Made by a program: the position numbers and the translations under genes
The notes under the pieces: generated by a model
Databases searched by the model: none
The model's input: only the letters and a program-made list of their open reading frames with translations
Told to the model about the DNA's origin: nothing
Assembly: GCA_964247055.1 (NCBI GenBank)
Contig: OZ176053.1
Coordinates: 10,230,001 to 10,294,000 of the forward strand
Direction: 5' to 3'
From: Paragordius varius
Lineage: Eukaryota > Animalia > Nematomorpha
Length of the DNA: 64,000 nt
Shown: one piece after another, positions 5,625-63,400 of the stretch
Layout: every line of letters begins with the position of its first letter
Position numbering within the stretch: position 1 is the stretch's first letter

Positions 5625-5668
<44 letters not shown>

Positions 5669-12300: not shown

Positions 12301-13418
12301 ACTAAAAACCGATGTTTACAAAACTATATAGTTTAATGGCCCTCACATATACATATAGCTATAATAAATTTATGATTGCAATCAATATTTAAAGATTAGG
12401 TATAATTTAAAATAATCCAAATTGAAAATATTATGATAACAAAGTTAAAAATAATCGTAAAATTGCAAATAAAAAACCTATAATTGCTATTTTTATGCCA
12501 TTTTGTAGAATTTGACCCCTGTTATCCACATCTTGCAAATACGCTTGCATATTTTTGTATAAATTCAAGACACGATTTATTATGGAATCAATTGTATTGG
12601 AGTGCTCTATATGATGATCCTCACTAAAATCGATCAACATTTCAATATCTGATTGGCACTAAAAATTACATTAATGTTAGTTTCTATATTTACGATAAGA
12701 TTGAGAATGAAATAAAAGTAGATTTTGATAAACCCTGAAAGAAAAGTGCATGACTCTTATGAATACAGTTATGTATACTGCTTATTATTCCTTAATGATT
12801 GGTTACAGTAAATTACAGTTAGAGAAAAATGATCTAAACACGTGGAGTTACTTTAATCAAATCCCTGCGCCAGTTAGAGTATAATTTTTTTAACTGTCCA
12901 CTGGTAATTCTTAAAGCTACTTTTCGTTGTTGTTCAGTTTCTGCAGAAAGCAGATCCGCCAATCCTTCAATTTGAGTTAAATCAAGTTTATTGTTAAAAT
13001 AAGCTCTTTCAATTAATTAATATTTCATTACCTTTTGGTGAATTCGCCTGGCTCGGCTAATTCGACACTTTCTAACGAATCCAATGCTTTGTACAGAGCT
13101 TTCTGAACGGCAGTTGAACCATGAATTTGAAACTCACAACAATCTTCTCCAGTGAAAGAATGAGGTTCTATGATTAAAGCTGATAAAACTTGTGTATAAT
13201 ATAAAAATTCCTTGATCAATGATTTCATTATCATTTGGCCAATATATATTGCATAAAAGAGCCTTCCGGGGTTCTATCCTTTTTCTTATCATCATATTTG
13301 CGATGCTCGTAACTAAGGGTCCAGAAACTCTGATAATACTTACCCCACATCTTCCAAATCCCGAAGAAAGACCGTAAATAGTGTGCAAACGCCTTATAAA
13401 TGTGTTAAATATTGGCAT
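9374..13418 (-). CDS. GTPBP3: Mitochondrial tRNA modification GTPase MnmE/TrmE (GTPBP3 orthologue), ~10 exons
   Basis: [22 protein letters not shown]; [17 protein letters not shown]; [35 protein letters not shown]; G1 [12 protein letters not shown]; G2 GTTRD; G3 DTAGIR; G4 NKID; invariant C-terminal FCIGK followed by TAG at 9374-9376. Confidence 0.95.
13006..13031 (-). other. 26-nt GT-AG intron (GTPBP3 intron 2)
   Basis: gtaatgaaatattaattaattgaaag; removal gives [15 protein letters not shown]. Confidence 0.9.
13168..13189 (-). other. 22-nt GT-AG intron (GTPBP3 intron 1)
   Basis: gttttatcagctttaatcatag; removal fixes the frameshift and gives [19 protein letters not shown] with MnmE spacing. 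Confidence 0.85.
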
Positions 13419-13819
13419 ACATTTTAACAGATTGGGTTGTAAAATATTTAAATTTTCTTGTAAGTAGTAGTCGAAATAAGCTGTTTTCTATAAATAGTAA
13501 TGTTATAATATTTTATTATTTTATTTAAAATATGTCCTCTTTGCCTAAGCTTTAGCTTTTATATGCATAAAATAATGAATGGCTAACATTTGAATATAAT
13601 TCATTCATATATTTATTTAATTCCTCTTTTAAATTTATGGAATTTTTTTTTATAAATTTACGATTTATCCTATGATTTATTTCACGTAACCCTTTATCTT
13701 GATTATTATCTAGTCAATCTCACCATATTCTAACCTATTCCATAGTATATTCTAGCAAGGTAGATCTTTCATGTTTTTACTAAATGATATTAAGTGACTA
13801 AACCATAATAGGTTCAGAT

Positions 13820-13985
13820 CAGGGGTGCAATAATGTAACTCTTTACTTAACAATCAATGGTGTTTGAGGAATTAAAGCAATAGATTTTGTTTTACCAGAT
13901 TTGATTAGGTTTTTAAAATTATAAAACTTCGCTTTTATTTTGTGTTTTTAATAATTTTACCCGGACCGCTTGTTGGACACCTTTG
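13820..13985. mobile_element. hAT MITE family B-related copy
   Basis: CAGGGGTGCAA...TTGGACACCTTTG; flanks GTTCAGAT/GTCTTGAT. Confidence 0.6.
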
Positions 13986-14487
13986 GTCTTGATATATATA
14001 GAAATATTTAAATACGAGCTTTTATGTTTTATTTTGAATATTATTCTTATGGATTTCATTAACAACATCAACTAGCAGTTATGTAATTATTTGTTAAAAT
14101 TGTATAAAAACTCAATGTTAGTATAACACTGCGCAAATCAGAGCGTATAAAAAAATATCCTGATTTACATATAATCTGATAGATAAATGTATCAGCATAT
14201 TCCTGTGCTTTTTTGTTTTAAGCCTTGAAATTCATTAAAAATCAATATAAATTTTGTGTGATTTATCCATGTCGAAAAACCGTAAAATTTGCATTATGCT
14301 AAATAAAATTCTTTAATAAAGCTAAAATCTTCACAAAAGACAATTAAAATGCATTAGCTGTATTTGTAAAAGCAAAATATATAAAATTTATATTAAGGTC
14401 CGGCCTCCCAAAATCTCAAGTTTTTGATGCGCTCTAAGCTAGTTTTATAAAATATAGAGATTTCGTTATATTTAATATATGCTTGAT

Positions 14488-14731
14488 AAGGGGGTGTTCA
14501 ACACGCGGACCCTTCAAGGCCTTATGTGCGGCTAGCGTTTTTAAGTCCATAATTTGTAAAAATATACTCATAAAATCTTATTAAAATTGATATTTCCAAA
14601 CAAATTTTATTAAATAATTCTATTCAATCGGCAAAAACTCAAAAAATTATTGTGTCTTCATTTTAAGTATGTTTGAAATCCTATAAGAGTCGAAAATGCG
14701 TCCGTGAAGTCATCTTTGTAGGATATCTCTG
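14488..14731. mobile_element. hAT MITE family B copy
   Basis: GGGGTGTTCAACACGCGGAC..ATGTGCGGC..GAGTCGAAAATGCG, collinear with 3448-3736. Confidence 0.7.
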
Positions 14732-15161: not shown

Positions 15162-17027
15162 CTGTAGCATATGTAAGGTGACCAGATTTTTTGAAGGAAA
15201 AAGCGGGACAAATCTGAGAAGGGGAGGGGGGGTTATGAGGTGGGGTGTACAACCAAAAATTTTTATAAAAAAAATTTATTGTAGTATTTATTTATTTTTA
15301 ATTTTAACACAAATACATTATAAATATAAAAAAATATTTAATTCCTTGGTATATTTTTTATTTGAGTGGATGCGTTTTAGCAGATTGTCATCATTTTATA
15401 AATTATTGTAGAAGTCTTCACAAGAATTTGTCAAATTAAATTTGACAGATAAAATGGTAAAGTTTCAACATTTGAATTTGATTTTTCCTATGTCCATATC
15501 TGATTTACTGTGGAAAAAACGCGCTCAGTAGCAGCGTTGGTTCCACGTAAAGATAATGCAAATTCTACAATTTTTAAAATATTGTATGGAACATATGTTT
15601 CAAAATGATGAAATATTTTTAACCATTTCTTTTCTACTGTATTTTTTTCTGTTGTCCATAATTTAAGTTTTTCATTATTAATATATTTTATAACTAATGA
15701 TATTTTAGAAAAAAGCTATTTTCTGAAAGTTTACATTTTGGGAATTTTTGGCAGATGCAGAAATGATTTTTGAATATCGCACCAATTAAATTCTGTTAAA
15801 GTTATCCAATGAAAATGATCAATTTCATTAAATTGCACCGTCCAGTCTTCCAATAATCTTTACAGTTTGTATGAAACATTTTTAATAGTACAGGATATCT
15901 TGGCGTTTTATTAAGCCTTGTTTTTTTAAATTATTTATAATATTGCGGATGGTTACTGGTATAAAATTATTTTATGACCTTTCTTGACATTGGAATTTTA
16001 GGTTAACTTCATTGGCTACTTCGATGGCCGAATTTTGTCACTTTCTATCAATTTAATAACATGAAAGAGAAAAGCTTGATTATGTAGAAACTATAACCAT
16101 ATTGAAGAATCACTTTCAAAAAACTTTTCCAAAATTGTAGGACATTTATTTGTCCTGTGATAAAAAATTAGGATTTTAAAGGATCATTTTTTAAAATTCT
16201 TTCTATAGCTGGCAGAAGAGCAAACCAACGAGTTTTACAATATCCAAGCATTTTTTAATATTGAACTTCTGCATTTGCACAGAATTTCTTAGGCGTTTCA
16301 ACGCGCACCGTGTATATAAAAATAGGAATATACCTTAACAACTACATTTTCCACATCTAGGGGTAACAAATCTGCAGCTGTTTGAATAGCGTTGTGTGTT
16401 ATATGCGCTACATACCCAACGAATATTGTTTTGATTAAGATTATCTGCTAATTACAGAAAATTATTTTTTGTTCGCCTCCTTGCTTTTCCAACGAAGTTC
16501 GTATTGGTGTTGTCACCGCAATATGCGTTTAAATTATTTTTTCCTAGAATATTCATTATTTAAGTAAAATTATGTCGGAATTCGCACCGGGTAGAGATAT
16601 AAAATTTAAAATTTTAATTTTACTCCGGTTTCTGGACCAAAATATTTTATTAACGTAGTATGGCGATATGAAATTAATTTTCAGCAAATCTTTTTGTATT
16701 CAGAAAATGCATATGGCGAAAGGACAATGTATACAATGGCTTCAAATAAAAAACTTTTATTTAAAATTGATATAATTTTAAAGATAACTAATGATAAATT
16801 TAAACGGATAAAAAAAATAAATTTTTTATAAAAAATTTTAATGTATTTAAAAAATTTAATTTTATATAATCGTGAAAAAGCGGGACATTTCTAAAACGCA
16901 GCGGGACGCGGGACAAAGTGTGAAAAAGCGGGACGTCTGGTCACCTTAAGCATATGTTATGAAACAAATATTAAATTGTTTATTTCAAATTTCGTCGTTT
17001 TTCAATTATTTTTTTCATACGCTACTG
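15162..17027. mobile_element. Small TA-flanked MITE split by the hAT insertion
   Basis: Left end TA-CTGTAGCATATG and right end CATACGCTACTG-TA; matches the intact copy at 56287-56393. Confidence 0.7.
15174..16948 (-). mobile_element. Defective hAT DNA transposon (Blackjack-like termini), 1775 bp
   Basis: 13-bp TIR TAAGGTGACCAGA/TCTGGTCACCTTA, perfect 8-bp TSD AGCATATG (15166-15173, 16949-16956), subterminal GCGGGACA repeats, and a minus-strand remnant of the hAT dimerization motif IVEFALSLRGTNAATERVFSTVNQIWT*EKS at ~15470-15570. Confidence 0.92.
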
Positions 17028-21289: not shown

Positions 21290-22219
21290 GTAAAAAAATA
21301 CTAAAAAAGGCATTATGTGGTTTAAACCATCGGCTATGAGTGTTCCCTAAAATAAAATCCTAATACCTCAGATATTCTTTATTTTTAAATTTAAATCATT
21401 GGATGCAGTATATTTTGAATTTCAAATATAAGATCTTAATAGGGTTAATTTTAAACCCAGACCACAAAAAGGAATATAAAGATGATTTAAAAGCAATTTT
21501 GTTAAATAAACATTTGAGGTGGCAGTTGAATACGGAAAATCGTTCGATATTTAGAGACTAAGTATTTTAGTATTGATAGTAGCGTGATCATATTAATATA
21601 ATGAGTTTAGTTAAACGGACATTAACTTTTGATATAGAGTGTAAACATATTAAATTACAGTAACACATTTATCATAGAATCAACTTAACTATCAAATGGG
21701 TATCTTCGTTCTAAAGCTTCAATTAAGGGTGGGAATGCCTTTACTGGCAGGCGACCGAGGATCTTACGATTGACGTTATACATTTTACTAGATACTCTCA
21801 AAATCAATCTTTGTTGTATGATTAAAATTATAAGTTCTTTTATATTACAACATTTATTTTTCATTATATATCGATATAATATATTTAATAAATTGAATAT
21901 TCATTTATTGTATACATTTTTAAATATATATATATAGCATTAAAATTCCATATCAATCATGTTTATAGTCTTCGGGATTTTTTTATGTCCTGATGCTTTC
22001 CTCACCGATTTGATCGGTGATGGAATTAAGCGGAAATCGTTCAATGGTAACTTTTATTGTTTTATTTCAAACGGAATAGAAAAACACTAATAAATCCAAG
22101 AAATAACTAAAACAAAAAATAAATATAGCATATCTAAAAGTTAAAAGTCTGTTTTATGACAAATTAATATTTGTATTGGGATTTGTACGGATTGTTGATT
22201 GATATTCCACTAATTTTAG

Positions 22220-34150: not shown

Positions 34151-34590
34151 TATCCGTTTCTTTTAATGTTTCATCCTTCTTCATAACTACTTCCGCCGTT
34201 TCTTCTAAAGTATTAACTTCCTTCATATCCAGTTCTTCGTTATATTCCCTTCTATTCATCCCTTCGTTCGTTCTATTAAAGATTCAGTGTTCCATATCCA
34301 GTTAAACCCCTTCTATTAAAAATACACTCTTCTTCAAAATCCTCTTCCTCCTAAGACCCCACCCTTCTTCATATCCCCTTTATCCGTTTCAATTGGAGTT
34401 TACTCATAGTTTTCTAAAGTAGCACCCATATTCGTGTCCACTTTAGCCTTTGTTAAAATTTATTCATTCCTTCAACTCTATCTAAAAATACCCTCTCCTT
34501 CCGATTCACCCGTTTTAAGGGTTTCTTTCATAATTTTATTTTATCCGTTGATTAATTTCCACACTTGAAATAACATTCATTCAACAAATA
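34140..34590 (-). pseudogene. Decayed E/K/D-rich repetitive coding sequence grading into the 42-bp array
   Basis: The minus strand reads EGMNRREYNEELDMKEVNTLEETAEVVMKKDETLKETDKVD* in the same register as the array unit, preceded by frameshifted pieces (MKETLKTGESEGEGIFR, ETDKGDMKKGG, EEEDFEEECIFNRRG). Confidence 0.6.
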
Positions 34591-36941: not shown

Positions 36942-39900
36942 TTAAGGAATAGGTTTTGGATGTATAAGGATTTTAATTGGGCTTGCTAGCATAATATCAT
37001 CATTTTGTGCATTGTATAAAGGATTATCTTTTGGCAAAATAGAATTTAATTCCAAGATTAAGTTGAATTCGACATAAGCGGGATCTGGCATTGTAAAGAA
37101 AATAATTAATAAAAACTTTTAAATTTTTATAATATAATTTAATAAATAATTACCTGTCCATGGGTGTTCTGATTCAATATATATGTTATGTTGCACTTTG
37201 TAACCGTGTGAATTTGATTGTTTTATAAAACAATTTATTGGAATGGGATGACTAATACATTTTAAATCTGGATATTTTATCTAAAAAAGAAAAGAATGAA
37301 GTAATAGATTGCAAACCATTGCCTTTATACATATCATCTATGTAGCTTTAATTTTAAAACCATTATTTTTTAATCAACAATAAGCGTGATTAACTATTAT
37401 TTGGTCCATTAATTAAAAAAGTCTTAATTTTCTATTATACATATTTTTCAAAATTTAAATATACTTCAATTTACAAAATAACCAAAAAAACAAACTTTAA
37501 TCTTTATGTGTTGAAATAAATCTTCTATTTTATTCAATCCAAGCATATTATTATCATCGACACCATCTAGTCGTTTCTGTTCTGGTAGAAATTCTAAATT
37601 TATTTCTGGGGCTATATCAGCTAAAACTGTGGCTTTTAATGAAAAACCACTAATAAATTTATAGGATATATCACGATCCTTATTTTCCATGGGATGTAAT
37701 ATATGAGCCTTGATGTGATACAATAAAGGTAAAGATTTGGATAAAGTATTAGTATCCATATTTATTACGGCATTTTTTTCATACAACGCTTTTATATAAA
37801 ATTGATAAATTTCTGTGATTATATCGGTAACGATAGGGTTTAATAATTCTAATTTATAATGACAGGTATCTTGTTGGTTGTGTTCAAGATCATTTGTTTC
37901 AAAGTTATCTGATGTGTGAAAATTATCGTGTAATTTGGTCAAATTTATTTTTAAAGTATTTGATAAGCCCAGGAAGGTATATGATGCCTTGTAGAGAAAT
38001 TGATTGACCTATCATACACGAAAAAATATGTTTTTGAAAAAAGAAATATAAAAATAAATAATAGTAACATTTATAAGCAAAGAAATAATTGAATTCTTAT
38101 TTACCTTGTTGTAGGCAGATGGCTTAAAAGTTTTATTGATTGTGTTTTGTTCATTGAATATTTTATGTGCCCCAACATAAAAGGCTAAAATTAGAGCTGT
38201 AAAATCTGCACAAGAACCCAAGCATACAAGGGCATTATGTGCATAAATTGTGAAGTCAAACTCTTTTTGACAGCTTGATTTTGGACGTGAAAATTGAAAA
38301 GCGCCATATTTACTTGATATGGATGATATATTTTGACATGTATCAAGTAATGTTATTACACGTTTTTGGATCCAAAAATTATTTGAATCAATAAAATTAT
38401 CATATATTTGTGTCTGATACATTTGGCAAAGTTTGTAAACCATTTCAATGGCGACTTTGGATTTTTTGATGCAGCCGGGTTGTCTAATAAATGTATAAAA
38501 AAATAACACGTTTTAATGCATTTTTAAACAGAGAAAAAAGCATGCAAATTCAAATGATGCATGCATTGTTAAAAAGAATAGAAATGTCATAAGGGATCGG
38601 GTTTTTTCGATTTATTATAAGCTAATAAAAATTATTAATACACATTGTATAAATAACAAATAATTTGTGAAAATAGCATGAATAAATTGAAAAAGGGGTG
38701 GTCATTCGATTCGACAAGTTATTCATTTCTTTAGCACAAATAGCTAAAACAATAAAATTTAATTAAACCGATAATTATACCGTAAACTTATTTCTGTTTT
38801 AAATAATTGTGGGAAACATTGTCGTAAATAGGGCGAGTGTCGATCAATTACAAACGATGGAAGTAAACTCATTCCAGTGTATGGTGTGTCCTGCGACTCT
38901 AATTCATCAATGGCATTGAGAATTAGGACAAGAGTGGCAATATAAACAACATTTTGGGTAATATCTGGTTCTGTCGGATCAAAATGAAAATCCAAACATA
39001 AGTTTCTAAATAATATAAGCGAGTTAATTATTTTGGTTTATATATTAACAAACTATTAAGATCAAATATACAAGTAAAGGGTAATAATGTGTGAAAGAAA
39101 CCTAATATAACCCAGAGGATTAGACTTCAGAAAAAGTGAAAAGCGAGTTAATTTACTACGCCTAAGCTCACAATTAAACGATAGTATTAATAATTCAAAA
39201 TTTATAAAATTTGGTTCTTTTTATGTGAAAATTTGTATTTTATTATAGTTTTTTGTCATTAATTTTAGTTTTACTATATAAAAGAGTGATATTTATTAAC
39301 AGTTCTATTTTTCAAACTTAAACGGGTGAAACCAGTTTTTTAACTGGCTATAATTTTTCCAGTTGCTTAATAATTTTAAAATAATCCGCCTACAAAATTA
39401 ATTTGTATTTAATAATTACTTTCCCTCCCTAAGTAAAAGTTGTTTAATATCGCGTGTTTGTGGCCAAACACCAACAAGGCTATCATCTAATGTTTTATTT
39501 TTATCTAAATCTCCACCTTTTACATTGCTATTTTGATTTGCGGATGTGGTTAAAAGGTCAAAAGAAATGCGTTTAAATGATGTGTAAGGGGAATCGATAC
39601 AAAGGAGATCAGGTATTAATCGCATCACAAATGCACTGTGCAGGTAAGCGAAATCACGAAATGTTCTATGCATACATAGGGGAATTATATATTTTGTTTA
39701 TATGGTTTTAATACAAAATAAATTTTTTATCTTAGCTATATATATATTTATATATATTTATGGATTTTAAAAGCGTAAACGGTCTGACCGTTAATTTATA
39801 ATCTCAAAAAAATAATTTAAGCAAGTAACTTGTGTTTAATAATCTTAATAACTATAAGTAATAGCAATCTATATAAAAGCCACAAACCTTTTAACATTAT

Positions 39901-42900
39901 GTAAAATTTGAATTATCAATTTTTTACATATATTAGTATCCGTAACAAATATTAATCCTAATTCATAAAAATTATAGTCAGAATGCATTCATAATTAAAT
40001 TATACCATTTACAATTCAAATTCACCCTAAAACAATTCAAATTCACCCTTGAACAATTCAAATTCACTTTCAAATAAACTATATGTTTTTTGAGATGAAA
40101 AATTTCCTATATATTTTTTATAATTTTAAAAAATAAATTTTGTTTTAAATTAAAATAATACTGATAAAATAATAAACTATGCCATAAAGATTTATTTCAT
40201 ATTAATAGTGAGTTATATTAGTTTGAAAACACATAATTTATTTTTAGGGTAAATTTGAATTGTTCAAGGGTGAATTTGAATTGTTCGAGGGTGAATTTGA
40301 ACTGTAAATGGTATATCAACTCAAACAAAAATTTAAGAAAGATAGTAAAAATAAAACATATAATAATTAATCTGTACTCGCATATGGACTGAAAATCTTG
40401 TGGATATTTGATTAAATTATATAACAAGTATCGAACAACAAGGGCAGTGCTAGCAATATCAGTCACTTTGCATTGAGCCAAAATGGTTCGCAAAACTTTA
40501 CGGATTTCATCATCAAAATCCTAAAATACAATTTTATAAATTTAATAGAAATTGTATATGCCTTTATCCATCGCAATTTTACAATAAATTCCATAATTAT
40601 ATATATACCATTTACAGTTAAAATTCACCCTTAAACAATTCAAATTCAACCTAAAAATAAATTATGTGATTTCGAACTAATATAACTCATTATTAATATA
40701 ATTTATGGCATAATTTATTATTTTTTAAGTATTATTTTAATTAAAAACAAAATTTTATTTTTGTAAAAATAGAGATAAATCTTAAAACATATAATTTATT
40801 TGAGGGTGAATTTGAATCAAGGGTGAATTCGAATAATTTAAGGGTGAAAATTCTAAATGGTATATAAAAAATAATCAAAAAATAATATTTGAATACAAAT
40901 ATTATTGCTAAGGTTATCGTAAACCATTTAAAAAATTAGATTTAATCTTACACTAGTCAACAAGGTTTTGCACCAACCCATTATTTTTGCATTTTCTGAT
41001 ACCTAATGGCATGGAAAGGCCAAAACAAAAAAGAAAATTGAGGCCACCAATAGGATTTTTCCAAAATTTAATTTTTAAATTTGTATTTAATTCAAAAATA
41101 ACAATCATTCCTCGTGAACATATGTTTAAATATTCAAACAAGCAAGTCGATACAAGTAATATTCCATGCAGGGATAACAAATTCTAGGCATTAAATAAGA
41201 TACTAAACAAGTTAAGAGCCAGAGTATTAAAAATCTAAAAGGGGCTAATTTATAGTGTGATAGATATGGGCGGCTGCACAAGCTCTGCATATCCCCCAAG
41301 CGATCCTATAATTATGCCAGATATGGCAATGATAACAATAAGTAATCGTAAAGTCCGATAAGAGAGACTTGCAAGCAAAATCCGGTCAAATTGACATGTC
41401 AAATTAACCAATTTACAGAATAAAGTTAGATAAATTCTACAATTAAATTGAATATAAATTAGGTAAATACAAATGGTCCAACCCCATAACAGTAAATTCT
41501 ACTAAAAGTGGCTACACAACATCCATCTGAAATTCAAAATACAAAACAACGAATAATCTTAAAAAAATAAGGTATATCCACTAGGTATAAATAAAGGATT
41601 TTTTATAAGAACCAACTTAAGAGAAAAAATCTAATAAGTACTTGAAAGAACGAAATCTAACAAAAAAATATACCCTATCTGAAAGCCGAAGGTTTAAACC
41701 ATAGAATACCTTTTTTAGTATTTTTTTAAAAAAATTTTATATGTGTTAAAAATTCACTTGAAAAAAAAGACTAAATTTTGACGTTTAAGTCCCTACTATT
41801 TTTTTGTTTCTGATATTTAAATGACATATTTATATTCAAAAGATAGAGTTTAAAACGCTTTATTAAATGATGTTAAGTTTATAATATAATAACATTTTAT
41901 TATAAAATTATATTTAATTTTCTCTCGATTTTCTCTTGTTTTTAAAAAATTAAAAAACTATAAAATTTCAAAATTCTGATTGGCGGGATCAAAATTTTTT
42001 TCAAATTCGGTTTTATAACACTGAAATTAGTCATAATTTAAAAAGTTTGAGTGGTGGTGCTTAAAAATGTCCAAATTTGTCGACTAGTGTTATCAACAGA
42101 CCTCCAAAGCACTTAAAATTATTTCAATTTGATCGGCTCGAAAAGTTATTTGGTTATCATCTCTATGACTGTGCTTCCCATCCTTTTCAACCGGAACATG
42201 CGACACAATGGTTTCTAAACATAAAATATTTATAGAATTTAGCGTTTACCCATAGATAGAATTATATTGTTCCTTTTAAAGATTTTGTTATATAAAGTTT
42301 CTTTTAACAAACCTTAAATGTCTTAAAAATGAGTGTAATTTAAGATTTGGATATAACTTTACAATATCTTAAAAATGGTATTGTTTTGGCAATTAAAAAG
42401 ATATATAAGTAAAATATAAATACAAAAAGAAATTATTGTAACAATAATCAAACGAATATAATTTAAGTTTAATGTTAGATATTATTTTAATATAAACGGA
42501 TAATTTGGGTTCGCAAATTCGAATTAATGGCATGAAAACATTAAAAAATATCTCTTAACTTACAATTACAGTTAGGCCAAAACCTTAATAAATGGTAAAA
42601 ACAATTAAAATATTTTTTAATAGTACAATACTAAGCAAATAGAGGATTTACATGGCTACAATTTTAATTATCTTAAATTTAATAATAATATATATATATA
42701 TATACCCAGTCCAATGATAGCTTTCAAACGTACGCTAGCTAATTCATCATTAAACATATCCACAAAAAATTCAACCACTTTGTGGGCAAATATTGAGGAT
42801 AAATGATGTCCATGCTCTATACTCATATATTTTATCAATAGAGTGATAAGTATTATTAAAGTCAGTTTCCTTTTTATACATAAAAAAATAGGTCCATTAA

Positions 42901-45579
42901 TAGCAAATATTCCAAATATATTGTCTTAAAAGGTTATTACAACAACATATCCATTAAAAAATGCAACGGCATATTCATTCAAATTTCGCTTAACGTTAAT
43001 TAATTCGTTCCCAACTTATGTGAATAAATTTCGGTAATACTGTAAAAAAAATAATTAAAAGCAATTTTAAATTTAATACAATCTTAGCTAATAACTTCGA
43101 ATCCTCAGAAGAGAATTCTTTTTCAAGCCCTGTAAATTATAACTTGTTGAATATAAATTTGTTTTAGTTTTTTATATGATATTAACATTAAAAAGTACAT
43201 ATTCATATTTTGCTATTCTATTGTTACTGTTATTGATTTAAGTCAAATAAATTACTTATGTTTACAATTATCCATAAAACAAAACATTTAAGACAAATTC
43301 TACATATACCAGTAGTTTGGAAAAGACGCAATGCCAATTTTGTCATAGATTGAATAGTTAATATCCGGACTTGAGAGTCCTCGTCCTCTAACCCATGAAC
43401 AAAAGCACCAGCCTCAGCGCTAATTACATTTTCATCGACTAAAATTATATTTGCATACATGTTATTATAGATAATAATAATTTTTATCGTATTAAAAAGC
43501 CAATTATCACAATTAATCATATGATATATTGACTCTGTTTAGAAGGTTGTGAAATGAAACGGTTGACTTATTTTTATAATTATAACTAGCCATCATCATC
43601 ATTATTACAAATGTTCAATATATTTTAAATTAGCCAAACTAAAGTTATTCGTGCAAACTGGTTGTTGCAATAGTATTCAAATATATCAATAAATATTTGC
43701 CGATTTCTATTAATTAAATTTTTAATTAGGTTTATTTGAATTCACTAACCGGTCAGACTCATGCCCTTATTTGAACTAAAAATATATTCCTTATACCTAT
43801 AACTGCCAAGGTGCCATTAATATAAAATCATTTATTATCCTATATATATTGTAAAAACAATTTTCTTTCCTATCCAATTAGCTTTAAAAAAGAAAATAGA
43901 TTTGTATACTTATGCGTTCCATAGGTCTATCATTAGCCCCAGTTCGTCCCTCCCCAGTTATGTGACCAAGGCGAGTGCGTTCGTGGAAATCGCGTTTTCT
44001 CCGCATGTTAGAAACCAAAATGCGTTTATCCAAAGTCTGTAAAAGTAATTCCGAATTAATTGGCCAAAGGACATTGTCGCTGTCACTTGGCTCGGCAAAA
44101 TTTTGACAATCATCTAAATTTTTGAATTCTGCGAAAAAATATGTTAAAATAGAAAATGTTATTTGCTTGAAAGTAGATCGAATTAAGGTGAAAATATATT
44201 TTTTGCATCATATGTTGATTATTATATATTCACTTATAGCAAAAACAAAGAAAAAACAATTAAGCGATTACATATTGGATAATCTATTTGTGTAATATTT
44301 GTTCGAAAAATAAAAATGTAATTCCAAGAGGTGTTTTATTAATTAAAAAGAATATTAAAAAAATACTTGAAAAAAATTCCGAAGAAATCAATGAATCTTG
44401 TTGATTGATATTAGATTCAGATAACAGTTTAACAGCTAAGGCTCTGATATCAGGCGAAATATCATTAATAACTAATTTACAAATCCGCATAAAGGCATCG
44501 TCCACATAATTATTATAAGGTAAAGGTAACTCTAAAAACTTTTGTTCGGGGACATATACGGTGTTGGAACCTAAAAATTAAACAATTATTTTAATTAGGA
44601 AAATTGAGATATTAACGCATTATAACAATGTAAATTATAAAAAAATCAAGCCAGAATGCGTATAAAATAAAATATGTTTTTTGACTTTTATTGGTATCGA
44701 AGAAAATTTCAATGAATTAACATAAAATGTGATGCCTTATATAGAGTGATATAGGTAGTTGATGAAAAAACCAGTAAATCAAGATTGTATACTCGAAAAA
44801 TTAAGCAATATCGCCCATAAATAAAAAAATTCCATCTTGGCATTAAAAGTCAATTACTTAGGTCAATGGTACTCGCCAAAAATAACGGCTGCAAAAATAA
44901 TTATATTGTCATAAGGGGGGAGCCTCATATAACAGCATAAGTGTAGATATATACAAATTATTTAATTTCATAAAAAACATTTGAGCCACTAGGAGCCCGT
45001 GAGCTGCGGTTAGTACCACTTATATATATTATTGATGAAAATTCTAAAAATTTAAAATTCCTAAAACTTACCATTTATTAGTGTCAACATTTCATTTTGT
45101 AAATGACTTTTGATCATAGCTACATCATAATATAAATAATGTTCCAATAGCCTAAATTTTACAAAAAGGTAAACTTTGTTTTTAACATTATGGCCATTTG
45201 ATATAATAGTATGAGAGATAATTTACGAATCTTTTCCCAATCGTCTTGTAAAAGAATACAGGCTAACGGATAATTAAGATCATGATCCAATTTAAATAGC
45301 TTAAAGTGAATTTCAATCTAAAATAACAAATAAAAATACCAGACAACTAATAGACGAAGTCCGTATCCTGGGCTCTTGACTTAGAGAGAAGTGTATAAGA
45401 ATTATTTGCAAAAGTCTCTTATGGTTATTATCAAAAAATGTGCTAGTAGTTTGATATGATTTAACAGTTCGATCAAATTGGTTAATGTACAAATATGTTT
45501 CATGATAATCAATTGAATTTAAATTGATTAAATTTATTCCCTCACGAATAAATTCAATCAGTATTTGGTTGATATCCAT
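36942..45579 (-). CDS. INTS4: Integrator complex subunit 4 (HEAT-repeat), multi-exon; some internal boundaries approximate
   Basis: Collinear INTS4 motifs: LLQDDWEKIR, VDDAFMRIC, LQTLDKRILVSNMRRKR, AGAFVHGLEDEDSQVR, FFVDMFNDELASVRL, ITFRADQIEIILSALE-DFDDEIR, NLIKYPQDFQSI, FDPTEPD..YIATLVLILNA, IKYPD..HPWT, C-terminal PIKILIHPKPIP then TAA at 36942-36944. The start ATG at 45579 is the only in-frame ATG in the first open frame. Confidence 0.92.
40001..40315. mobile_element. MITE family A copy (INTS4 intron)
   Basis: TATACCATTTACAATT...ACTGTAAATGGTATA with repeated 21-bp modules; explains the spurious FKFTLEQ tail of ORF 40218..40493. Confidence 0.9.
40604..40864. mobile_element. MITE family A copy, opposite orientation (INTS4 intron)
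   Basis: TATACCATTTACAG...TCTAAATGGTATA; the internal sequence is the reverse of the copy at 40001. Confidence 0.88.
45152..45174 (-). other. 23-nt GT-AG intron (INTS4 intron 2)
   Basis: gtttacctttttgtaaaatttag removes an in-frame TAA and opens the frame to a GTAAGT donor at 45071; this is a poorly conserved part of the protein. Confidence 0.65.
45318..45339 (-). other. 22-nt GT-AG intron (INTS4 intron 1)
   Basis: gtatttttatttgttattttag; removal gives SISCL-IEIHFKL..LACILLQDDWEKIR. Confidence 0.85.
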
Positions 45580-45626
45580 GCGGATAATGTGGAGTTTCAC
45601 CTTGCCATGTGTTGCGCAAAATTTAA
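45580..45626. promoter_or_regulatory. 47-nt spacer between divergent start codons of INTS4 and XRCC3 (putative bidirectional promoter)
   Basis: INTS4 ATG at 45579 (-) and XRCC3 ATG at 45627 (+). Promoter function is inferred from position only. Confidence 0.6.
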
Positions 45627-47680
45627 ATGCGTCTTTTAGATTTAAATCTTGATCCAAAAATAAAGATAAAGCTACTTGGAGGTAATATCCTATTACATCA
45701 AAGGCAAGTTAAAAAACAAAGAAACTGATGAAATTTTACTCTATTCTACAGAGCATTTAAAGAAATTGACTAAACTTTCCTACGGAGAATGCGTTGAAAT
45801 TCAAAAGGCCCTCGCAACGCTCTCTTATAAATGCCATAATTTTGTAAAGGGCATATACATCGGTATTGATTTAATCGATAAGGCATTGGGAGGCGGCATA
45901 CGTTTAAAAACTGTTACCGAGATATCAGGGTGTTCAGGAACCGGAAAAACCCAATTTTGTTTACAATTGGCGGCAAAATTTCTTTTACAAAATACGAATG
46001 CGAATAGTTGTAAATTATTTATATAAGATAGATGTTTTATATATTAATACCGAAAATGCATTCCCTATAAATCGATGCAAACAAATATTAACCGCTTGCC
46101 AAATGTCTGGCCGACGGATGAATAATATAACCGAGTGCCTTTTGCTAGATCACATAGGAGACATAGTTTTATATGTATTAACTATTTAGAAAAGTTTGTG
46201 GTTTTGTCTGAAAAAGAAGATAAATTTACTGATAAATTCGGGGAAAAATATCAGTTTGATAATTATCGATTCAATTGCTTCGCTATTTCGGGGTGCAAAA
46301 ACACCCCAACTTGAATTAGAAAATTGTAATAACAACAATAAAACTGAAACAAATTCAAATTTTCAAATTACGAATGATATTCGAGAAATCGGAAGATGTC
46401 TTTTAGAATTGGTACAAAATAACAATTTGGCCGTTGTATGTATTAATCAAGTATTATTTTTGTTTTTTATAGGAAAATACCAAATAATGTTGTATTTTTT
46501 ATATTATTGTATTAAAAGCATACAAAGGATTAGTTTCATGTGAAAAAAAGTTATTTTTAGAAAATTTTTTTTTACCTTATTTAGTATTAATTTTTTATAT
46601 TTAATTTATCTGAGAGTAAATCCATAAAAACAAGTTTTTTTGCACAATGAATTATGCAAAATCTCCACTCAATAAAATTTTTATTGATATAACTTTTAAC
46701 ATAAATTTGTTATAACTATATTCTTCACAGGGCAAAATTATTAAATTTACTAATTAAAAATAAAATTTATTTGTCTTTTGAGTACTTCAATTTATTAAAT
46801 TAGGCCGGATTCGGTCCCCAAAATTGGCAAATAAATTAGAACAGAAACCATTTCACCGATAGCACACCTAATATATCTATCATACTGTATATGTATTCAA
46901 AAAATTAAATCAAGTTTAACAGCTCTCGTAAACGATAACTTGCTAACTCTAAAATACTTTAAAAATTTTTTCTTAAACATCGTTTTGGTCAGATTACTTT
47001 AATGCATACTTTACTATATATTATTCTGTTTTAAACAACTTATCTATACCGAAAAGTTATTGTTTAGGTCATAAAATTCAAGTTTTAACACTTAATCGAG
47101 CAAATAGTAATTTTGTAAATTTCTCGGATGATATTAGTCTAATTCAAAATTATTTTAATTCGAATTAATTTTTTGTTATTTTAGAAATCATTTTATTCTC
47201 TTTGTTTTAAAATTAAATTTAAACGATGGTTTTCTCGATTTATCATATCTATCTTTTTTTAAATCCTATTCTAGATAACAGATTTTTTTCACAATTAATG
47301 CCTTTCATAACTAGATGTCAGATATGATTGAGATGAACAAAAACACACCAAACTATCAATACTACAATGGTATGGGTTATTTCAAAGTGCTACATAACAA
47401 TGCAAAGTCCCAAGAATGTATAATGTTTGAAAATGAGCATAAAATACCGTGTTTGGGGTTAACATGGGCCAATTTTGTGACTACCCGTTTATTAATAACT
47501 AAAAATCCTACGTACGAATCCAACGATAATTTAACCGAACAACAAATGAATGATGACACGCTTAAAATAAATTATATTGCAAATCCGCGGTTTTTGCATG
47601 TAATATCTAGCCCATATGCATCTTATTCTATTACAAAATTTTACATAACTCCAGATGGCATTCGTGAAAACTATGTGTGA
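45627..47680 (+). CDS. XRCC3: RAD51 paralog XRCC3, 5 exons (45627-45681, 45704-46009, 46032-46165, 46190-~46450, 47315-47680)
   Basis: MRLLDLNLDPKI N-terminus, Walker A GCSGTGKTQFCLQL, YINTENAFP, DHIGDIKSLWFCLKKKINLLI (XRCC3-type [21 protein letters not shown]), Walker B IIIDSIASLFR, VVCINQ, IPCLGLTWANFVTTRLLI, SSPY. Confidence 0.9.
45682..45703 (+). other. 22-nt GT-AG intron (XRCC3 intron 1)
   Basis: gtaatatcctattacatcaaag joins ATG 45627 (MRLLDLNLDPKIKIKLLG) to GKLKNKETDEILLYS. Confidence 0.85.
46010..46031 (+). other. 22-nt GT-AG intron (XRCC3 intron 2; alternative donor at 46007 gives 25 nt)
   Basis: gtaaattatttatataagatag; removal fixes the frameshift and gives VLYINTENAFP. Confidence 0.85.
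46166..46189 (+). other. 24-nt GT-AG intron (XRCC3 intron 3)
   Basis: gttttatatgtattaactatttag ends in an in-frame TAG; removal gives a gap-free match to the XRCC3 motif. Confidence 0.88.
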
Positions 47681-48195
47681 ATAAACCGAAACCAGATTTT
47701 TAAACTGAATTTTGATCTCATTTATAAACTTTATACGGGCAGAATAATAAAAATTGATATATATTTAGATGGCTGATTATAACTCTAATGTGTTATTAAT
47801 CCTTGGCTGGTATATTATCAAAGTTTTTAAATCATTTTATTCTATATATCCAACTCCTGGTTAGAGTAATATGATGATTCAACTTTTTTCTTATTTATAT
47901 CAATTTAGACAATGTTAAGGGATAATAGCAGTTTTTAGCAAAACTTTTTTTAATGGAGTTCTGAAAGCGATATTATGTTTTTATACCAATATATCCATAA
48001 CTATAAATTTATTACAATTTCACATTAAAGCATATAAATAATAATAATAATGATGATAAAAAATCGGACATACAAAATAAATTAGAATATAGAACTATTA
48101 TATAAAAAGCCTAAAGGAACATTGTGGTGTGTTGTAGTATAAAATGGTAAAATATTTTTGGGAGTATTTGAGGCCGAGTCCAGCTTTTTTTCATA

Positions 48196-56393: not shown

Positions 56394-59300
56394 TAATTAA
56401 TTAAAAAGTGATTGGTTTATAGCTTCCTCAAATCATGATACTTGATATTAAATTTACGCATTCCAAATTTCAATTTCTAGAAATCTCATATTTTCTATAT
56501 TAAAAACTTTTTTGGCAGATATTTTGACGCCCTTTTAATGTTTTGAACATAGTTTAACACAGGACCGAATATGTATAAATGGTAATAAGTCATTCTCATA
56601 CTATGTAGATAAAATTATTTCGCTCGATAAAATTTTCGACTGAGGAATTACATTAGAAATCAGGCAAATATTTTAAGTATGCATGAAAACGAATCGAGTT
56701 TATGCCTATAAAATGCTGCCCAATATAATGGTATTGCTAGGAAAAGTTTTCTTTTGTTTTTATTATATAAGGAACATTTTTGGTTGGGACTATAAGTCGG
56801 TTTTCGAAAATTCCCAAGAATTCGTTACTGTTAGGGGTAATTTCCCCATTTTGGTTGTTTTTTCTAAAAACCACAAAATTACAAATTTGTTAAATACACC
56901 TTAATTAAATTTTAAAAATTGAAAAAAATGTTTACATAGTATTAAAAATTTGAAACATTAACAAATAAATAATCACAGGTTTCCATTCCAAAAAAATTTC
57001 TTTTCACGATATATTGGGGAAAAAAATAAAAAATCATATTATTCATTAGTTAAAGATAGTACGGAAACCGTGCAAACCAAGGTTATAACCAATATCCTTG
57101 TTCATCTTTCTGAAAAGACCCTAGGGCTTTAATAACCACTCCAGGTTTCATTTTTATATTTTTACCAGTTTTGGAAACCCATTTTAAACATAGTACATGG
57201 CTTTCGGTAAATATCCGATACATTTCTCAAATAATTTTGGTGATGCAATATGTAATATGGCTATTTTTTTTATAAATTTTTCCATTTACAAGAATAAATA
57301 TATTATGGCGTGCTTTTATCTATAATTAATTAGCGCAAAACTATTATTCAACCTCGTATTTTAAAATTTTTAACCGGCTTAACTATCATTTAAAGCCGGG
57401 GTGTTCAGCACCCTGGCAGAACCGACTTATCGTGATGGCCTAGCTAGAAATTTACATTATATATAATTTTTACAATTATAATTTAAACTAAATAAGGAAA
57501 GATAAAATTAACTATGCGGCTTGCTTGTTGGGCTTTTCTTAACTAAATGATCGGATAAACTAAAGATTTGTAAATAAAAATTAATAAATGTCCCCATCAG
57601 ACGCGTTAATTATTTTCGAATGGTTGGAACGGACTATAAAACAATGATAGTCATTAAAAATATCATTTATTATTATTAAATTGATCGCATCCGGGTGTAT
57701 ATATCCTAAGCGGTTTCCATATTAGGCACCCCTTATATTAAGCAAATGTATCATGCCACTCGTTCTTTAATTAAATTAAAGATTTTATTTTTATCCTAAC
57801 TATGCCAATTTTCGAGAACTTTTTTTTAAAAAAATTTGGGTTGATTAAATATATCGACATGTTATTTAATAAATTAATATAGTATAGGACTGGTAAAATC
57901 ACCCCTTTTTCCCATTCAATTATATTATACCCGCAAAAATTTTGACCGTCGTTACCACCTCTAATATGACCTGACATAATAAACATTCTATTTGTACCCC
58001 TACAATAAAAATCTTATTCAAATAATTTTAGAACCGCGGATCAAGCTGTGGATATTAAGCCATGTATTTTCTCCCACAATCTAGAATAGTATGGCGAAAG
58101 AGTTAAGTCTATATAAAAGTTTTGTTAATAAAGTAATGTATATATACATCAGGCAGACAAATTGTATTTATAGTAGCTAATTAACAAAAAATAATTTCCC
58201 ACATTAAAATACAAATAACCATACAGATACCAAATTAAATTTTAATACTTATTAACATTTTTTGATTATATTAACCACAAAAGGAACACCGTTAAAAATT
58301 AAGTTGTTTAAAAAAATAATTTAATAAGTTTCTTTGATACTTTTCGGTTTAGACAATATAGATATTTTTACTTTTATTTTTGGTCTTTCATACAAATTTA
58401 TAGTCCCACCGTCAATTTCATTTATGTATCAGAGTAATGTTATATTTTACCTTTTGCTAAATACTAATAAAAAGATAAAATTAATTACATTAAATACAAA
58501 TTTAAACTTTTTTCACTTTGACTTTATAATATAATTTTATTTTAATCTTTTAAACCCATAAATTACGACAACCGTTGACATTTCGGTTAGTAGAGATAAT
58601 AGGACGGCATTCCTTATTAATAAAAGACAATGTCATAAATTAAAGTTAATGTTGTATATAAAATCATCTTTTTCCAATTTATTCAAAGGTGAAAATTATT
58701 TTAAAAGTCGCGAGAATGGTCGTGAAATCATTTATATGCAAAATGCCATAAACTCTATTTGGAACTCATTTAATTTTTGAAACCATTAAAATTTGTATTG
58801 CCTTATAAAAAATATATTAGTAAAATAATTATTGAATAAGCATCTATAAATTTAATAAAATATTTGGACTTTAGCGCAATTAATATAATAAAGTTATTTT
58901 GTATATTAATAATCGCTTTTAAGCCCAAATTTATTTATTAATATATTTTATTGAATTATTTTTAAAATATGGAAATTAGGAATTACGCCTTTTCTCACTA
59001 AAGCTAAACCAATATGTAATTTTTTGTATGTTTTGAAAATGATTGTTAAGTCTTAAAAGCGATCACTTTTGATAGGTAAGAGAATAATTATAAAACATAA
59101 ATGTATATTCCTTCTGGATATGGTATAATACCATTCATGGTTATTTCAAAGATACATGAGTAAGTATACATTGCTAGAAAGTTTTTAATTATTGCCAATT
59201 AGTAAATACAACAAAGGGCAGTATTATTGGTTAATAATAGCAAAAAGTGAAAAAAATAACTATAAGCCAATAATACTGCATAACTTTTTAGCAATGTAAA

Positions 59301-60430
59301 CTTATTCATACTGTATAAATATAGTTCAGATTTTTGATTATTGATAAAACTTGTTTGTTAAACCAAACATTGATTTCTCACAAAACTAATAACAACAAAA
59401 TTTTGATATTAAATAAACATATTTTAGGTTGTAAATGCAGATTTTTAAATTTTATAAAAACAAAAAAATTATTACACCATATTAGTAAATAATTTTATAA
59501 AATCAAAAAATTAGAGGGTTAGTGGGAGTTTTGCGATAGTCAGGCCTACCCATTGGGAATCGTAATTATTATGGTTGAAACCGAATAGTAACACTGTTTA
59601 CCAATAGTCATGTGGTTTCGTTTTTGGGATTTAGCAATCACAAAAAAAGAGTCAGGTACTTTGAAAATTAAAAAAGATTAATACAATAAAGAATAAACGA
59701 TATCAAATCTGTCTCAATGTTTATAATATAGATAGATTATATACATATATATGATGGAAAAAGCGAGTAATTAATATATAAAATTTTTTGCATTGCAGCT
59801 GCTCGAGGATTGAAAATTTTTTTATACAATCACATGAACAATGTGGGTTTTAATAATATTACGGGGTTCTCTCCACTACTTTTTTAACATTTATAATTTA
59901 TACATTGCATACCTGGAATTATAATACGGTTTCAAAAATGACTTCGGTGATATAATTTAATATATTTTTTATTTTTTGGAAATTTTATAAAAATGTATTG
60001 AATTTACTTTTAAAAAGAATGGTGACCAATATTTAAACGCTTTAACAAATAATTAAGTGATGTTTACGGATTTAAAATTTTAATTACAAAAATTTAAAAT
60101 GAGCAATCAGCTTTTGGTTTAATAGTTATTATAAGTTATATAATTGGGTTTTTATACAATGATTACCTTTGTGGAAGATATTGATTAAAAATTAACTTTA
60201 TTAGCGAAACTTGATTTTTAAGCGGTAAACCCATCAATATTGGAATTTTATCGGTTTAAAACCTTTAACACAATTAATCGTAATGCCATATAAAATTTAT
60301 TTAAAATCATGTAAAATTTGCTACAAGAAAATGAGTTTTGTTTCATCAATTGCCTTACACAAGAGGTGATATCATCTGTTAAATCGAGCAGAATATTTGA
60401 TTTGAATTTGGCTCAGTTTCAGATATTTTT

Positions 60431-63400
60431 ATGGCTGCTGTTGATTCTATTGAATATATTTCAAAAGAAGTTGAAAAAAGTTTAACTGAAAACGTATACC
60501 ATTTTTAATGTAATTTGATAGGATGTTTTGCAAAGATATAAGAAAAATTTGACGCTAATAAACCCCAAATATTTGTTGATAACCAAGGTTTACGAATAAT
60601 AATGTTAGACTCAACTTGCGGACTATAAAAAAGCCCTTCAAAATTCTAAACTTTCTTTAAAAGAGCAAAACATAATAAGCAACTATTTGGAAGCCAATGT
60701 TCATCCCGACACAGGAAAGAAAATACACCCTTTATTCACGATGGGTGGTTATGTATGGTCTGGGATACCAATAGTTGCATGTCTCTTGTATTTTCATTCT
60801 CCTGCTTGGAAAACGTTTTTGAATGCTCACCAGAGTATGGCACATAAACCCTTGTATGCGACTTATCCAATTTTATTTTTTCAATGGTTGAATCAAACCC
60901 AAAATTCCCTATTTAATTATGCAAATCGCAATGCATCTGTAAGTGTCTCATATCATATTGTAATATTCTAATTGCATTAATTTTAATATACAGAAAACTA
61001 ACGAAAGTTCATTGCTTATAAGTTATATATTAGCCACTTCCAGTGCTATGGGAATTGCCATTGGTAACTATAATTATTTTTTTATTAATTGCTGCGCATT
61101 CATTAACATAATTTATATTTTTTTAAACAAATATTGTTAAGGTCTTGAGAAACTTTGTTCTACCACATCAACCAAAAGTCTTTTGATGCGAACTCTGAGT
61201 CCAGCGATTCCATTTCTCTCTGTAGGTTTATTTATTTAATTAATGTCCATTTATTTTAATATTCTAATGACAAATTTTGTAATGCGCATGCACCATCATC
61301 CAATTAATATTTAATTAGTTCTTGATATATAAGTTAAGTTATGTAAATATATTATTTTTATTCTATGTTATCATAAAATTACTTTTAATTTACGACTGCA
61401 ATTATATAAGTTTAAAATACATTAGTCTATGTAGATATATATTCTTTTATAAAGGTTATTTCAAAATTTGTCAGTATATATTATCTTTTTGTTCAATTAT
61501 CGCTAATTTTAGTCGCGATGTTTATAACTTATTACATAATATAAAGTTGTAATTTTTCTTACAGGCCTGCAACATAATTTTTAATTGGTTATTGATAATT
61601 TATTTTGGTGTTTCACATAGTACTAATCAAAATACTTTTTTCAAAAAATAATTGTGTAAATGCGTTTTTTGTAATAATGACATATTAAATAAGGTAGATG
61701 TGTACAGATTTTGATATAAATTATAAATGAACATCTTAGAGTTAAGAGATTTGCGAATAAATTTATTTCTTGTAAATAATTATTTTGTAACTATTTTCAC
61801 AAAATGCATTTTTGCTAAAACCTCTTGATTAGTTTTTATTTTGCGAAAAATTGTAGTTTTCGTTTTATATTATTTTTGTTTGTTAAGATTGGTGGTTTCG
61901 CACTTTTTTATTGAAAATTAATATTTAAATAGATAGTCCTTCAACTATAAGAGATGAAACTTCACCACTAACTTTTTAACAGTGTTTTTCGGGAAATTGT
62001 TTTGTTGTTTCTTTATAAATTGTAATAGGTTTTCCCTGATTTGTGCGCTTTTAATATGCCTTATCAAGAATACTTTTACGTCTTTATATCTTGACCATAA
62101 CACCACAAAAGTTTTAATAATTTTTAAACAATTTTATCAAATTGATTATGTTTACCGTTTTTAACAAACTTTTTTGATTGCTTATGTTGATATGTACCGA
62201 AACTACTTTTAACGAAATAAGATAATCAAAATTGATACAAAGAGGATGGTAATAAATTTTTCTTAAAACACGAATTTTTGTTTTTAAAGGTTTTATATTT
62301 TCCGTGTTCTTTTGATTGCCGTCACTCAATATGTTATAACTTTCCAGAAATATAATATTTTATCGAACGATTTGCTTTATAATAAATTTTTAGTTTTAGA
62401 AGGAATTAATTTATTTTTATATTCACCAATTTTGTCAGTTAATCAAAAACAATGATTGATAATACATGACATGTTAATGTTACGAATAAAATATTATTCT
62501 ATTAATCATTTTATTAGCTTCCGTGCCCGTTTTGTACTGACCACTTTTTTTGAGAAACAGTCTTCATTGTTTGTCCAATAATACACCATTTTCAAAAATT
62601 TACCCTTTAACTATTCTAATTCACCCTTGAACAAATCAAATTCTTCCTAAAAATAAATTATCTTTTTTTCGGGCTAATATAACTCATCATTAATTAGAAA
62701 ATATATTATGGCATAATTTATTATTTTTTCAGTATTAATTTAATTTTAAACAATTTTTTATAAACATAAAAAAATATAGTTAATTTTTAATTTAAAAAAC
62801 ACATTATTTATTTTAGGCTGAATTTGCATTGTTCAAGGGTAAAATTGTTCGAGGGTTAATTTAAACTGTAAATGGTATTATATAAGGAGTTGTAATAGAG
62901 ATAGGGTGGTACCTTTGTTAAATTTTGCACTTTTTGTTTTTTTACCATCGTATTCATTTTTCGGTTTTCTTCGGTGACCCACTCTTAAATTTAACTTTAA
63001 ATAAATTAACGATTCTAAAAAATTGGATGTTACCTTTTTAATTAACAAATACAACATAAATTAATATAATCGTTTATCTTTAAAATTATTTAGGGTATTT
63101 TCGAAAATAAAATTTTTCCTTATATATTTGGCTGGGTTAAGAATATTATACATATTAGTTTATACATGTATAGCATCAGCAAATGTTGTAAATTTGTTAA
63201 GCATGAGATATCCCGAATTAAAGAATGGCATTAAAGTTTTTACGCATGATGGAAAATATGTCGGAGTATCTAAAAAAGCGGCAAAAAAGGTTGAAACAGA
63301 AATTTTCATTTTTATATATACTATTAACTTTTAATCTAAAAAGATGGAAATTTTTATTTTTACAGTTAATTTCGTTATTAATTGGCAGGCGCTATTTGAA

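Follow-up and report, generated by a model that had tools for sequence, protein, structure and literature searches.

Introns of 21 to 28 nucleotides are predicted in the 5' portions of four genes of the hairworm Paragordius varius, with larger introns downstream

We analyzed a stretch of 64,000 nucleotides (nt) from the hairworm Paragordius varius (phylum Nematomorpha; GenBank assembly GCA_964247055.1, contig OZ176053.1, positions 10,230,001 to 10,294,000), referred to here as the 64-kb window. Its GC content is 26%. Four genes in the window, encoding a GTPBP3/MnmE-type protein, an INTS4-like protein, an XRCC3-like RAD51 paralog, and a sideroflexin, have introns of two size classes that are sorted by position. 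The tiny introns (21 to 28 nt, n = 9) are the first two introns of GTPBP3, the first two of INTS4, the first three of the XRCC3-like gene, and the first two of the sideroflexin gene, and their starts lie 55 to 539 nt downstream of the ATG. The lengths of the remaining 24 introns range from 55 to 1948 nt, with starts at 508 to 7475 nt from the ATG. The nine small segments are predicted from the sequence to be genuine U2-type GT-AG introns.

The gene models were assembled from a reading of the sequence together with the six-frame open reading frames (ORFs) of the window. All four models are complete, each being a single open frame with one terminal stop. Together they contain 33 introns (4 to 12 per gene), and every one of these has GT-AG ends. 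An initial annotation of the same DNA had listed nine tiny introns of 22, 26, 22, 23, 22, 22, 24, 28, and 21 nt with their offsets from the ATG, and it had placed the start of the first conventional introns at 567, 508, about 824, and 508 nt. The nine sizes and offsets were all exact in the rebuilt models, and the first conventional introns were recovered at +567, +508, +824, and +508. The coordinates are collected in Table 1.

The placement of the tiny introns at the first ranks was then expressed as an exact within-gene probability, which is 1/(36 x 66 x 4 x 28) = 3.8e-6. Intron length was correlated with genomic distance (Spearman rho, 0.63) and with position in the coding sequence (CDS; rho, 0.67). 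As the initial annotation had proposed, the tiny class is confined to the early region of each gene: in all four, it takes up no more than the first two or three introns and starts no farther than about 540 nt from the ATG. Its range for the downstream introns, about 55 nt to 2 kb, likewise agrees with the lengths measured for the 24 introns. A fixed switch at about 500 to 550 nt, which it had also put forward, holds as an approximation, but the boundary is not sharp, since one tiny intron starts at +539 and conventional introns start at +508 in two genes.

The length distribution itself appears to have two separate lower edges. No intron of 29 to 54 nt was found among the 33, and five of the nine tiny introns are exactly 22 nt long. 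The short downstream introns measure 55, 57, 78, 81, 96, and 99 nt, the low values clustering at about 55 to 61 nt. A ZP-domain gene elsewhere in the window has a 61-nt GT-AG intron at 4291-4351 on the minus strand, immediately following an exon that measures 1.27 kb or more, and this size fits a floor of about 55 to 60 nt for introns that are not at the 5' end. The first (signal-peptide) exon of the ZP-domain gene was not found; an intron containing (AT)n and repeats precedes the big exon at 5626. The narrowness of the tiny class and the downstream cluster at 55, 57, and 61 nt suggest that there are two floors. The short downstream introns, of 55 to 246 nt, consist of unique sequence, not repeats, and so does the 61-nt intron of the ZP-domain gene. 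Therefore, the larger class is not simply made of tiny introns inflated by transposons.

To judge whether the nine segments are introns, the coding sequence on both sides of each was compared with protein profiles, solved structures, or an orthologue. The support is strong, at the level of sequence, for GTPBP3 and the sideroflexin gene. In a per-exon Pfam search, GTPBP3 exon 1 corresponded to positions 1 to 65 of TrmE_N and exon 2 to positions 68 to 110 of 117, with only the split codon between them. Residues 9 to 51 of exon 3 matched positions 1 to 43 of MnmE_helical, and exon 4 resumed at position 46. The TrmE_N and MnmE_helical profiles thus continue without gain or loss across GTPBP3 introns 1, 2, and 3, and this profile continuity is what predicts the introns of this gene. 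The C-terminal motif of GTPBP3 (...FCIGK) could also be read from the sequence. The sideroflexin model matched Pfam SFXNs with an E value of 1e-15, and its introns are predicted from their positions and phases in an orthologue from another hairworm (see below).

For the other two genes, the support for the predicted introns is moderate. Exon 2 of the XRCC3-like gene aligned with the Walker A regions of the solved XRCC3 and RAD51C proteins (8gja_B residues 82 to 121), and the top match of exon 4 in the PDB was XRCC3 (8gja_B residues 185 to 221), aligned from the third residue of the exon. Exon 3 yielded no homologue by itself in Pfam and PDB searches; together with the split codons, it encodes about 47 residues, a length that fits the gap from 121 to 185 in 8gja_B. 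XRCC3 intron 1 lies between exon 2 and the 18-codon exon that holds the ATG. The identity of INTS4 was given by two adjacent exons whose top PDB matches are Integrator subunit 4, in collinear order (human residues 373 to 403 and 405 to 432; fly residues 475 to 503), and its C-terminal exon had no match in Pfam or PDB. The removal of INTS4 intron 1 joins a 131-codon ORF to the following ORF in a different frame, and that of intron 2 likewise joins ORFs. INTS4 introns 1 and 2 are predicted from this joining and from codon statistics. For exons that lacked homology support, we used a codon model trained on the other genes, with stop-free intronic segments as the control. The codon log-odds of INTS4 exons 1 to 3 and of all XRCC3 exons were positive in the proposed frame and about zero or negative in the other two, and those of INTS4 exon 2 and XRCC3 exon 3 were above the 95th percentile of the stop-free intronic segments.

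The sequences of the nine segments were also inspected. Retention of any of them would lead to a stop within 1 to 18 codons. Their length is not a multiple of three in seven cases, and the two multiples (24 and 21 nt) hold an in-frame TAG and TAA, respectively. With n = 9, this pattern of stops upon retention (9/9) does not reach significance. In eight of the nine, a TNAY motif was present whose A lies 7 to 12 nt from the 3' end, although such a motif is fairly frequent by chance in AT-rich DNA. No U12-type 5' splice site (/RTATCCTT) was seen in the sequences read. The reading of the nine segments as introns in the initial annotation was thus supported by the open models, the continuity of profiles or orthologue, and the GT-AG ends of all nine. 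An open scan for GT-AG segments of 18 to 40 nt that join ORFs was discarded as too permissive, because it returned 311 segments versus about 105 in shuffled sequences, most of them inside real ORFs.

Next, the sideroflexin gene was compared with its orthologue in another hairworm. The best sideroflexin relative among 1.8 billion representative proteins came from the horsehair worm Gordionus sp. m RMFG-2023, with 47% identity over the whole protein. The Gordionus locus was taken from GCA_954871325.2, and the submitters' 375-amino-acid (aa) model (P0068), which comes from an annotation based on RNA-seq and protein evidence (BRAKER1/2), was aligned exactly to the genomic DNA. The Gordionus introns are 40, 40, 46, 39, 42, 11944, 39, and 39 nt long, with phases 0, 0, 0, 1, 1, 0, 2, and 0. 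The sideroflexin gene of the window, which was modeled independently, has the same eight phases, and the eight intron positions coincide in the protein alignment. Five internal exons are also of the same length in both hairworms (70, 84, 116, 89, and 115 nt). From the common positions and phases, the 28- and 21-nt sideroflexin introns are the counterparts of two 40-nt introns of Gordionus.

The two genes thus resemble each other in intron positions, phases, and internal exon lengths, and the Gordionus genome is AT rich as well (26.9% GC, according to its genome preprint). They differ in intron size. In Gordionus, the small class (introns 1 to 5, 7, and 8) is 39 to 46 nt long and is present at the 5' and the 3' end of this gene alike, with neither introns below 30 nt nor polarity. 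Compared with Gordionus, the first two sideroflexin introns of the window are 12 to 19 nt shorter, and the later ones are 9 to 1900 nt longer. This comparison covered sideroflexin, and hence two of the nine tiny introns; on the thin basis of one gene, it suggests that the split into 21 to 28 nt versus at least 55 nt is derived in this lineage. The RefSeq version of the Gordionus sideroflexin (XP_065315315.1; P0001, 299 aa) does not include exons 1 and 2, its first residue being an internal Met. The submitters' model joins these exons through the two 40-nt introns (locus L001, positions 10001 to 11014). Because exons 1 and 2 are missing from the RefSeq protein, automated pipelines are likely to miss 5' ends when they annotate hairworm genes.

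Table 1. Predicted gene models in the window, their tiny introns, and the first larger intron of each gene (positions are those of the window)
Feature	Positions	Strand	Size	Ends	Phase	Start from ATG (nt)	Remarks
GTPBP3/MnmE-type gene	9374..13418	-	10 exons, 519 aa				introns 22, 26, 193, 567, 281, 57, 179, 494, 666 nt
GTPBP3 intron 1	13168..13189	-	22 nt	GT-AG	1	+229	if retained, stop after 18 codons
GTPBP3 intron 2	13006..13031	-	26 nt	GT-AG	2	+387	if retained, stop after 1 codon
GTPBP3 intron 3	12659..12851	-	193 nt			+567	first conventional intron
INTS4-like gene	37466..45579	-	13 exons, 924 aa				introns 22, 23, 501, 238, 471, 493, 491, 1581, 712, 414, 297, 96 nt
INTS4 intron 1	45318..45339	-	22 nt	GT-AG	0	+240	
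INTS4 intron 2	45152..45174	-	23 nt	GT-AG	2	+405	
INTS4 intron 3	44571..45071	-	501 nt			+508	first conventional intron
XRCC3-like RAD51 paralog	45627..47680	+	5 exons, 373 aa				introns 22, 22, 24, 864 nt
XRCC3 intron 1	45682..45703	+	22 nt	GT-AG	1	+55	if retained, stop after 15 codons
XRCC3 intron 2	46010..46031	+	22 nt	GT-AG	1	+383	
XRCC3 intron 3	46166..46189	+	24 nt	GT-AG	0	+539	last codon is an in-frame TAG
XRCC3 intron 4	46451..47314	+	864 nt			+824	first conventional intron
Sideroflexin gene	60431..63991	+	9 exons, 334 aa				introns 28, 21, 55, 78, 1948, 99, 81, 246 nt
Sideroflexin intron 1	60494..60521	+	28 nt	GT-AG	0	+63	if retained, stop after 4 codons
Sideroflexin intron 2	60588..60608	+	21 nt	GT-AG	0	+157	in-frame TAA inside
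Sideroflexin intron 3	60939..60993	+	55 nt			+508	first intron of the larger class

Several explanations of the pattern were considered. The initial annotation had put forward a promoter-proximal regime, with either assistance by the cap-binding complex or an H3K4me3 zone of slow elongation as a possible cause. The one that we tentatively favor, with a mechanism that we infer, invokes the mode of splicing and two position-dependent floors. It is favored because the tiny class is narrow, because the downstream class seems to have an edge at about 55 nt, and because short downstream introns of unique sequence have stayed well above 22 nt. According to this explanation, the nine introns would have shrunk to a lower limit of about 21 to 22 nt at ancestral intron positions (both of those amenable to comparison correspond to 40-nt introns of Gordionus), and the later introns of the same transcripts would be held at a higher floor of about 55 to 60 nt, with growth to kilobases being possible. 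Each floor would correspond to its own way of pairing splice sites as the transcript emerges. Near the cap and the promoter, splice sites may pair directly across the intron (intron definition), possibly with the help of the cap-binding complex. This cap-proximal mode would tolerate a minimal spacing of the 5' splice site, branch point, and 3' splice site, with a TNAY-like branch motif 7 to 12 nt from the AG. Farther downstream, pairing would require a longer intron, and a deletion bias would push each class of introns to its own floor. A tiny intron left in the transcript would lead to a premature stop, and unspliced RNA would yield no full-length protein.

A more specific proposal is that the distance from the 5' end of the transcript sets the shortest intron that can be removed, about 21 nt in the first 0.5 kb or so and about 55 nt farther along the same pre-mRNA, and that this regime arose within hairworms. 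The latter part is proposed because the Gordionus orthologue shows one floor, of about 39 nt, at its 5' and 3' ends. We regard this proposal as doubtful. With four genes, an effect of distance from the transcription start site (TSS) is inseparable from one of intron rank or of position in the CDS.

A number of points weigh against the explanation by splicing mode. The sample consists of four genes, the evidence for the second floor consists of three or four introns, and the data fit a position-dependent regime of mutation or selection as well as they fit a splicing constraint. Distances were counted from the ATG, not from the TSS. As for excision and the exact junctions, the sequencing runs labeled as RNA (X4 to X6) gave no contig over 58600-64000 and contained 0.00 of the sampled words of 43000-48000. 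Runs X1 and X2, which are presumably DNA, hold about 0.9 of the sampled words of the latter region. The exact sizes are not fixed either, because alternative in-frame GT-AG pairs, 18 to 40 nt long, are available in four of the nine tiny introns: INTS4 intron 1 could be 28 or 40 nt, INTS4 intron 2 could be 35 nt, XRCC3 intron 2 could be 18 to 25 nt, and XRCC3 intron 3 could be 20 or 29 nt. Moreover, GT-AG readings of 28 to 30 nt are possible at three downstream donors (45044-45071, 39390-39419, and 37988-38017). By a rough estimate, this is about the number expected by chance in such AT-rich sequence. INTS4 adds two further points. Pfam and PDB searches with its exons 1 to 3 were empty, and its N terminus is about 100 residues shorter than that of human INTS4, so that an upstream exon, and with it another zero point, is possible. 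On the other hand, the INTS4 ATG lies only 47 bp from the divergent ATG of the XRCC3-like gene.

An alternative that we consider less likely, though plausible, accepts both the introns and their polarity as real and places the cause in evolution. Introns of about 22 nt would be spliceable anywhere, and the first 0.5 kb or so of housekeeping genes would be kept free of insertions, such as transposable elements (TEs), miniature inverted-repeat transposable elements (MITEs), and tandem duplications. This could be due to open chromatin at promoters, to bidirectional promoters that overlap, or to selection being more efficient there, for example; deletions would then take early introns to the floor, and downstream introns would drift up. 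In line with it, repeats are found in long downstream introns (INTS4 introns 8 and 9 and sideroflexin intron 5, with further high-copy elements in run X3), and the common 47-bp divergent start region of INTS4 and XRCC3 indicates that their 5' ends are densely functional. Compared with Gordionus, moreover, downstream sideroflexin introns have grown (from 39 to 81 nt, from 39 to 246 nt, and from 42 to 1948 nt), and the 5' ones have shrunk. However, none of the 24 downstream introns, nor the intron of the ZP-domain gene, is shorter than 55 nt, although many of them are unique and repeat free at 55 to 250 nt. Toward its 3' end, the Gordionus orthologue also still has introns of about 39 nt, and a 3' position by itself therefore forces no growth. 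A version of this alternative based on promoter-centered recombination or biased gene conversion was rejected because the GC content at third codon positions (GC3) does not rise at the 5' end, being 0.286 in the first 498 nt of the CDS versus 0.280 in the rest.

It is improbable that the polarity is an effect of sampling or ascertainment, with tiny introns actually distributed over the whole length of genes across the genome. The sample comprised only four genes, windows come to notice when a pattern is visible in them, and a tiny intron that lacks a stop and has a length divisible by three would go unseen within a downstream exon; the three ambiguous downstream candidates of 28 to 30 nt are compatible with such a spread. 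Yet the complete models need no downstream frame correction, and the exact probability given above argues against it. The least probable alternative, to which we give hardly any credence, is that the segments are not introns at all, but assembly indels, frameshifts of pseudogenes, or sites of translational recoding. The missing coverage of the sideroflexin stretch in the RNA-labeled runs leaves room for it. On the other side, all nine segments begin with GT and end with AG within a range of 21 to 28 nt, and the frames are restored with continuity of profile or orthologue. Two of the segments lie exactly at annotated intron positions of Gordionus, and the remainder of each gene is intact. In addition, no deletions were seen where the independent run X3 (low-depth DNA from an almost identical organism) covered the sideroflexin stretch.

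Some further observations concern the 5' ends of these genes. INTS4 (minus strand) and the XRCC3-like gene (plus strand) are arranged head to head at 45579-45627, with 47 bp separating the two ATGs. Either each transcript overlaps the first exon of the other gene, or the 5' untranslated regions (UTRs) are extremely short. An acceptor-like GTTTCAG is located 9 nt upstream of the sideroflexin ATG (60415-60430); it could be the acceptor of a 5'-UTR intron or of trans-splicing. If it is a real acceptor, the distance from the transcript start would change its meaning for this gene.

Repeats were mapped around and inside the genes. The initial annotation had described the downstream introns as often carrying MITEs. 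This was partly supported: repeats detectable inside the window are present in 3 of the 24 downstream introns (INTS4 introns 8 and 9 and sideroflexin intron 5), the last of which also holds a high-copy element, but "often" goes further than these counts. The contig depth of run X3 rises from about 2- to 6-fold to about 1000- to 10000-fold at 59143-59323 and at 62582-62943, the latter being within sideroflexin intron 5. These two segments are very high-copy short elements, MITE-like in character. A short repeat family, one frame of which reads FKFTLEQ..., occurs at 39981-40520, 48621-48765, and 49955-50107, that is, in INTS4 introns 8 and 9 and in the region of a neuropeptide gene. Elsewhere in the window, a 12-kb tandem array at 22218-34235 is made of 287 copies of a 42-bp unit (94% matches) and has a strong skew of C over G. 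A transposon remnant at 15178-16945 contains an ORF with a hAT-like C-terminal motif (15491-15715, minus strand) and has inverted ends with "aaaagcgggac"; further degraded transposase-like ORFs are found at 17 to 18.2 kb.

A polarity of this kind has been reported before. In Schistosoma mansoni, many genes carry their small introns mainly toward the 5' end, in the first few exons, and larger introns follow downstream (Protasio et al. 2012, PMC3254664). These small introns escape standard transcript assemblers (PMC3254664). The view of the initial annotation that such a polarity had not been described was therefore overstated, given what had been published for S. mansoni (PMC3254664). The four hairworm genes are like those of the fluke in having small first introns and larger ones later, and no mechanism has been established in either case. 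They are unlike them in that they belong to Nematomorpha (Ecdysozoa) instead of Platyhelminthes, and in that the small class is 21 to 28 nt long, with a clean gap up to 55 nt. The small introns of flukes are about 30 nt and more. The hairworm pattern is thus an extreme version, in a new phylum, of the 5'-small/3'-large polarity reported for S. mansoni.

Tiny introns are also known from dicyemids, ciliates (Paramecium and Stentor), and nucleomorphs, in which nearly all introns are tiny, with a floor of about 15 to 30 nt, and the genomes are compact. The hairworm introns share with these a narrow length at the floor, GT-AG ends, and AT richness; premature stops upon retention may be a further common feature. 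In contrast to these systems, only 9 of the 33 introns are tiny here, and they are restricted in position, next to kilobase introns, in a repeat-rich genome. Our literature search returned no hairworm paper that discusses introns, a 2023 genome paper on Acutogordius and Nectonema being outside its coverage. The word "intron" is absent from the Gordionus genome preprint and from a preprint on the comparative genomics of Nematomorpha and Mermithidae. What is new here is that position-restricted introns below 30 nt are predicted in an animal with a repeat-rich genome, whereas flukes already provide a published case of the polarity itself.

To our knowledge, introns shorter than 30 nt are very rare in animals. 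The presence of a polarity in both flukes and hairworms suggests convergence, and hence a general cause that can be tested. If a gene finder or RNA aligner accepts no introns below about 20 to 40 nt, many hairworm genes would come out truncated or frameshifted at the 5' end, and the 5' ends lost in this way could inflate the apparent gene loss reported for Nematomorpha. In AUGUSTUS, a default minimum of about 39 nt, if it applies, would hide shorter introns. Because tiny introns and kilobase introns are sorted by position within single transcripts, these genes provide a natural system for the study of minimal intron length, in which one may ask whether proximity to the cap or the promoter alters the pairing of splice sites.

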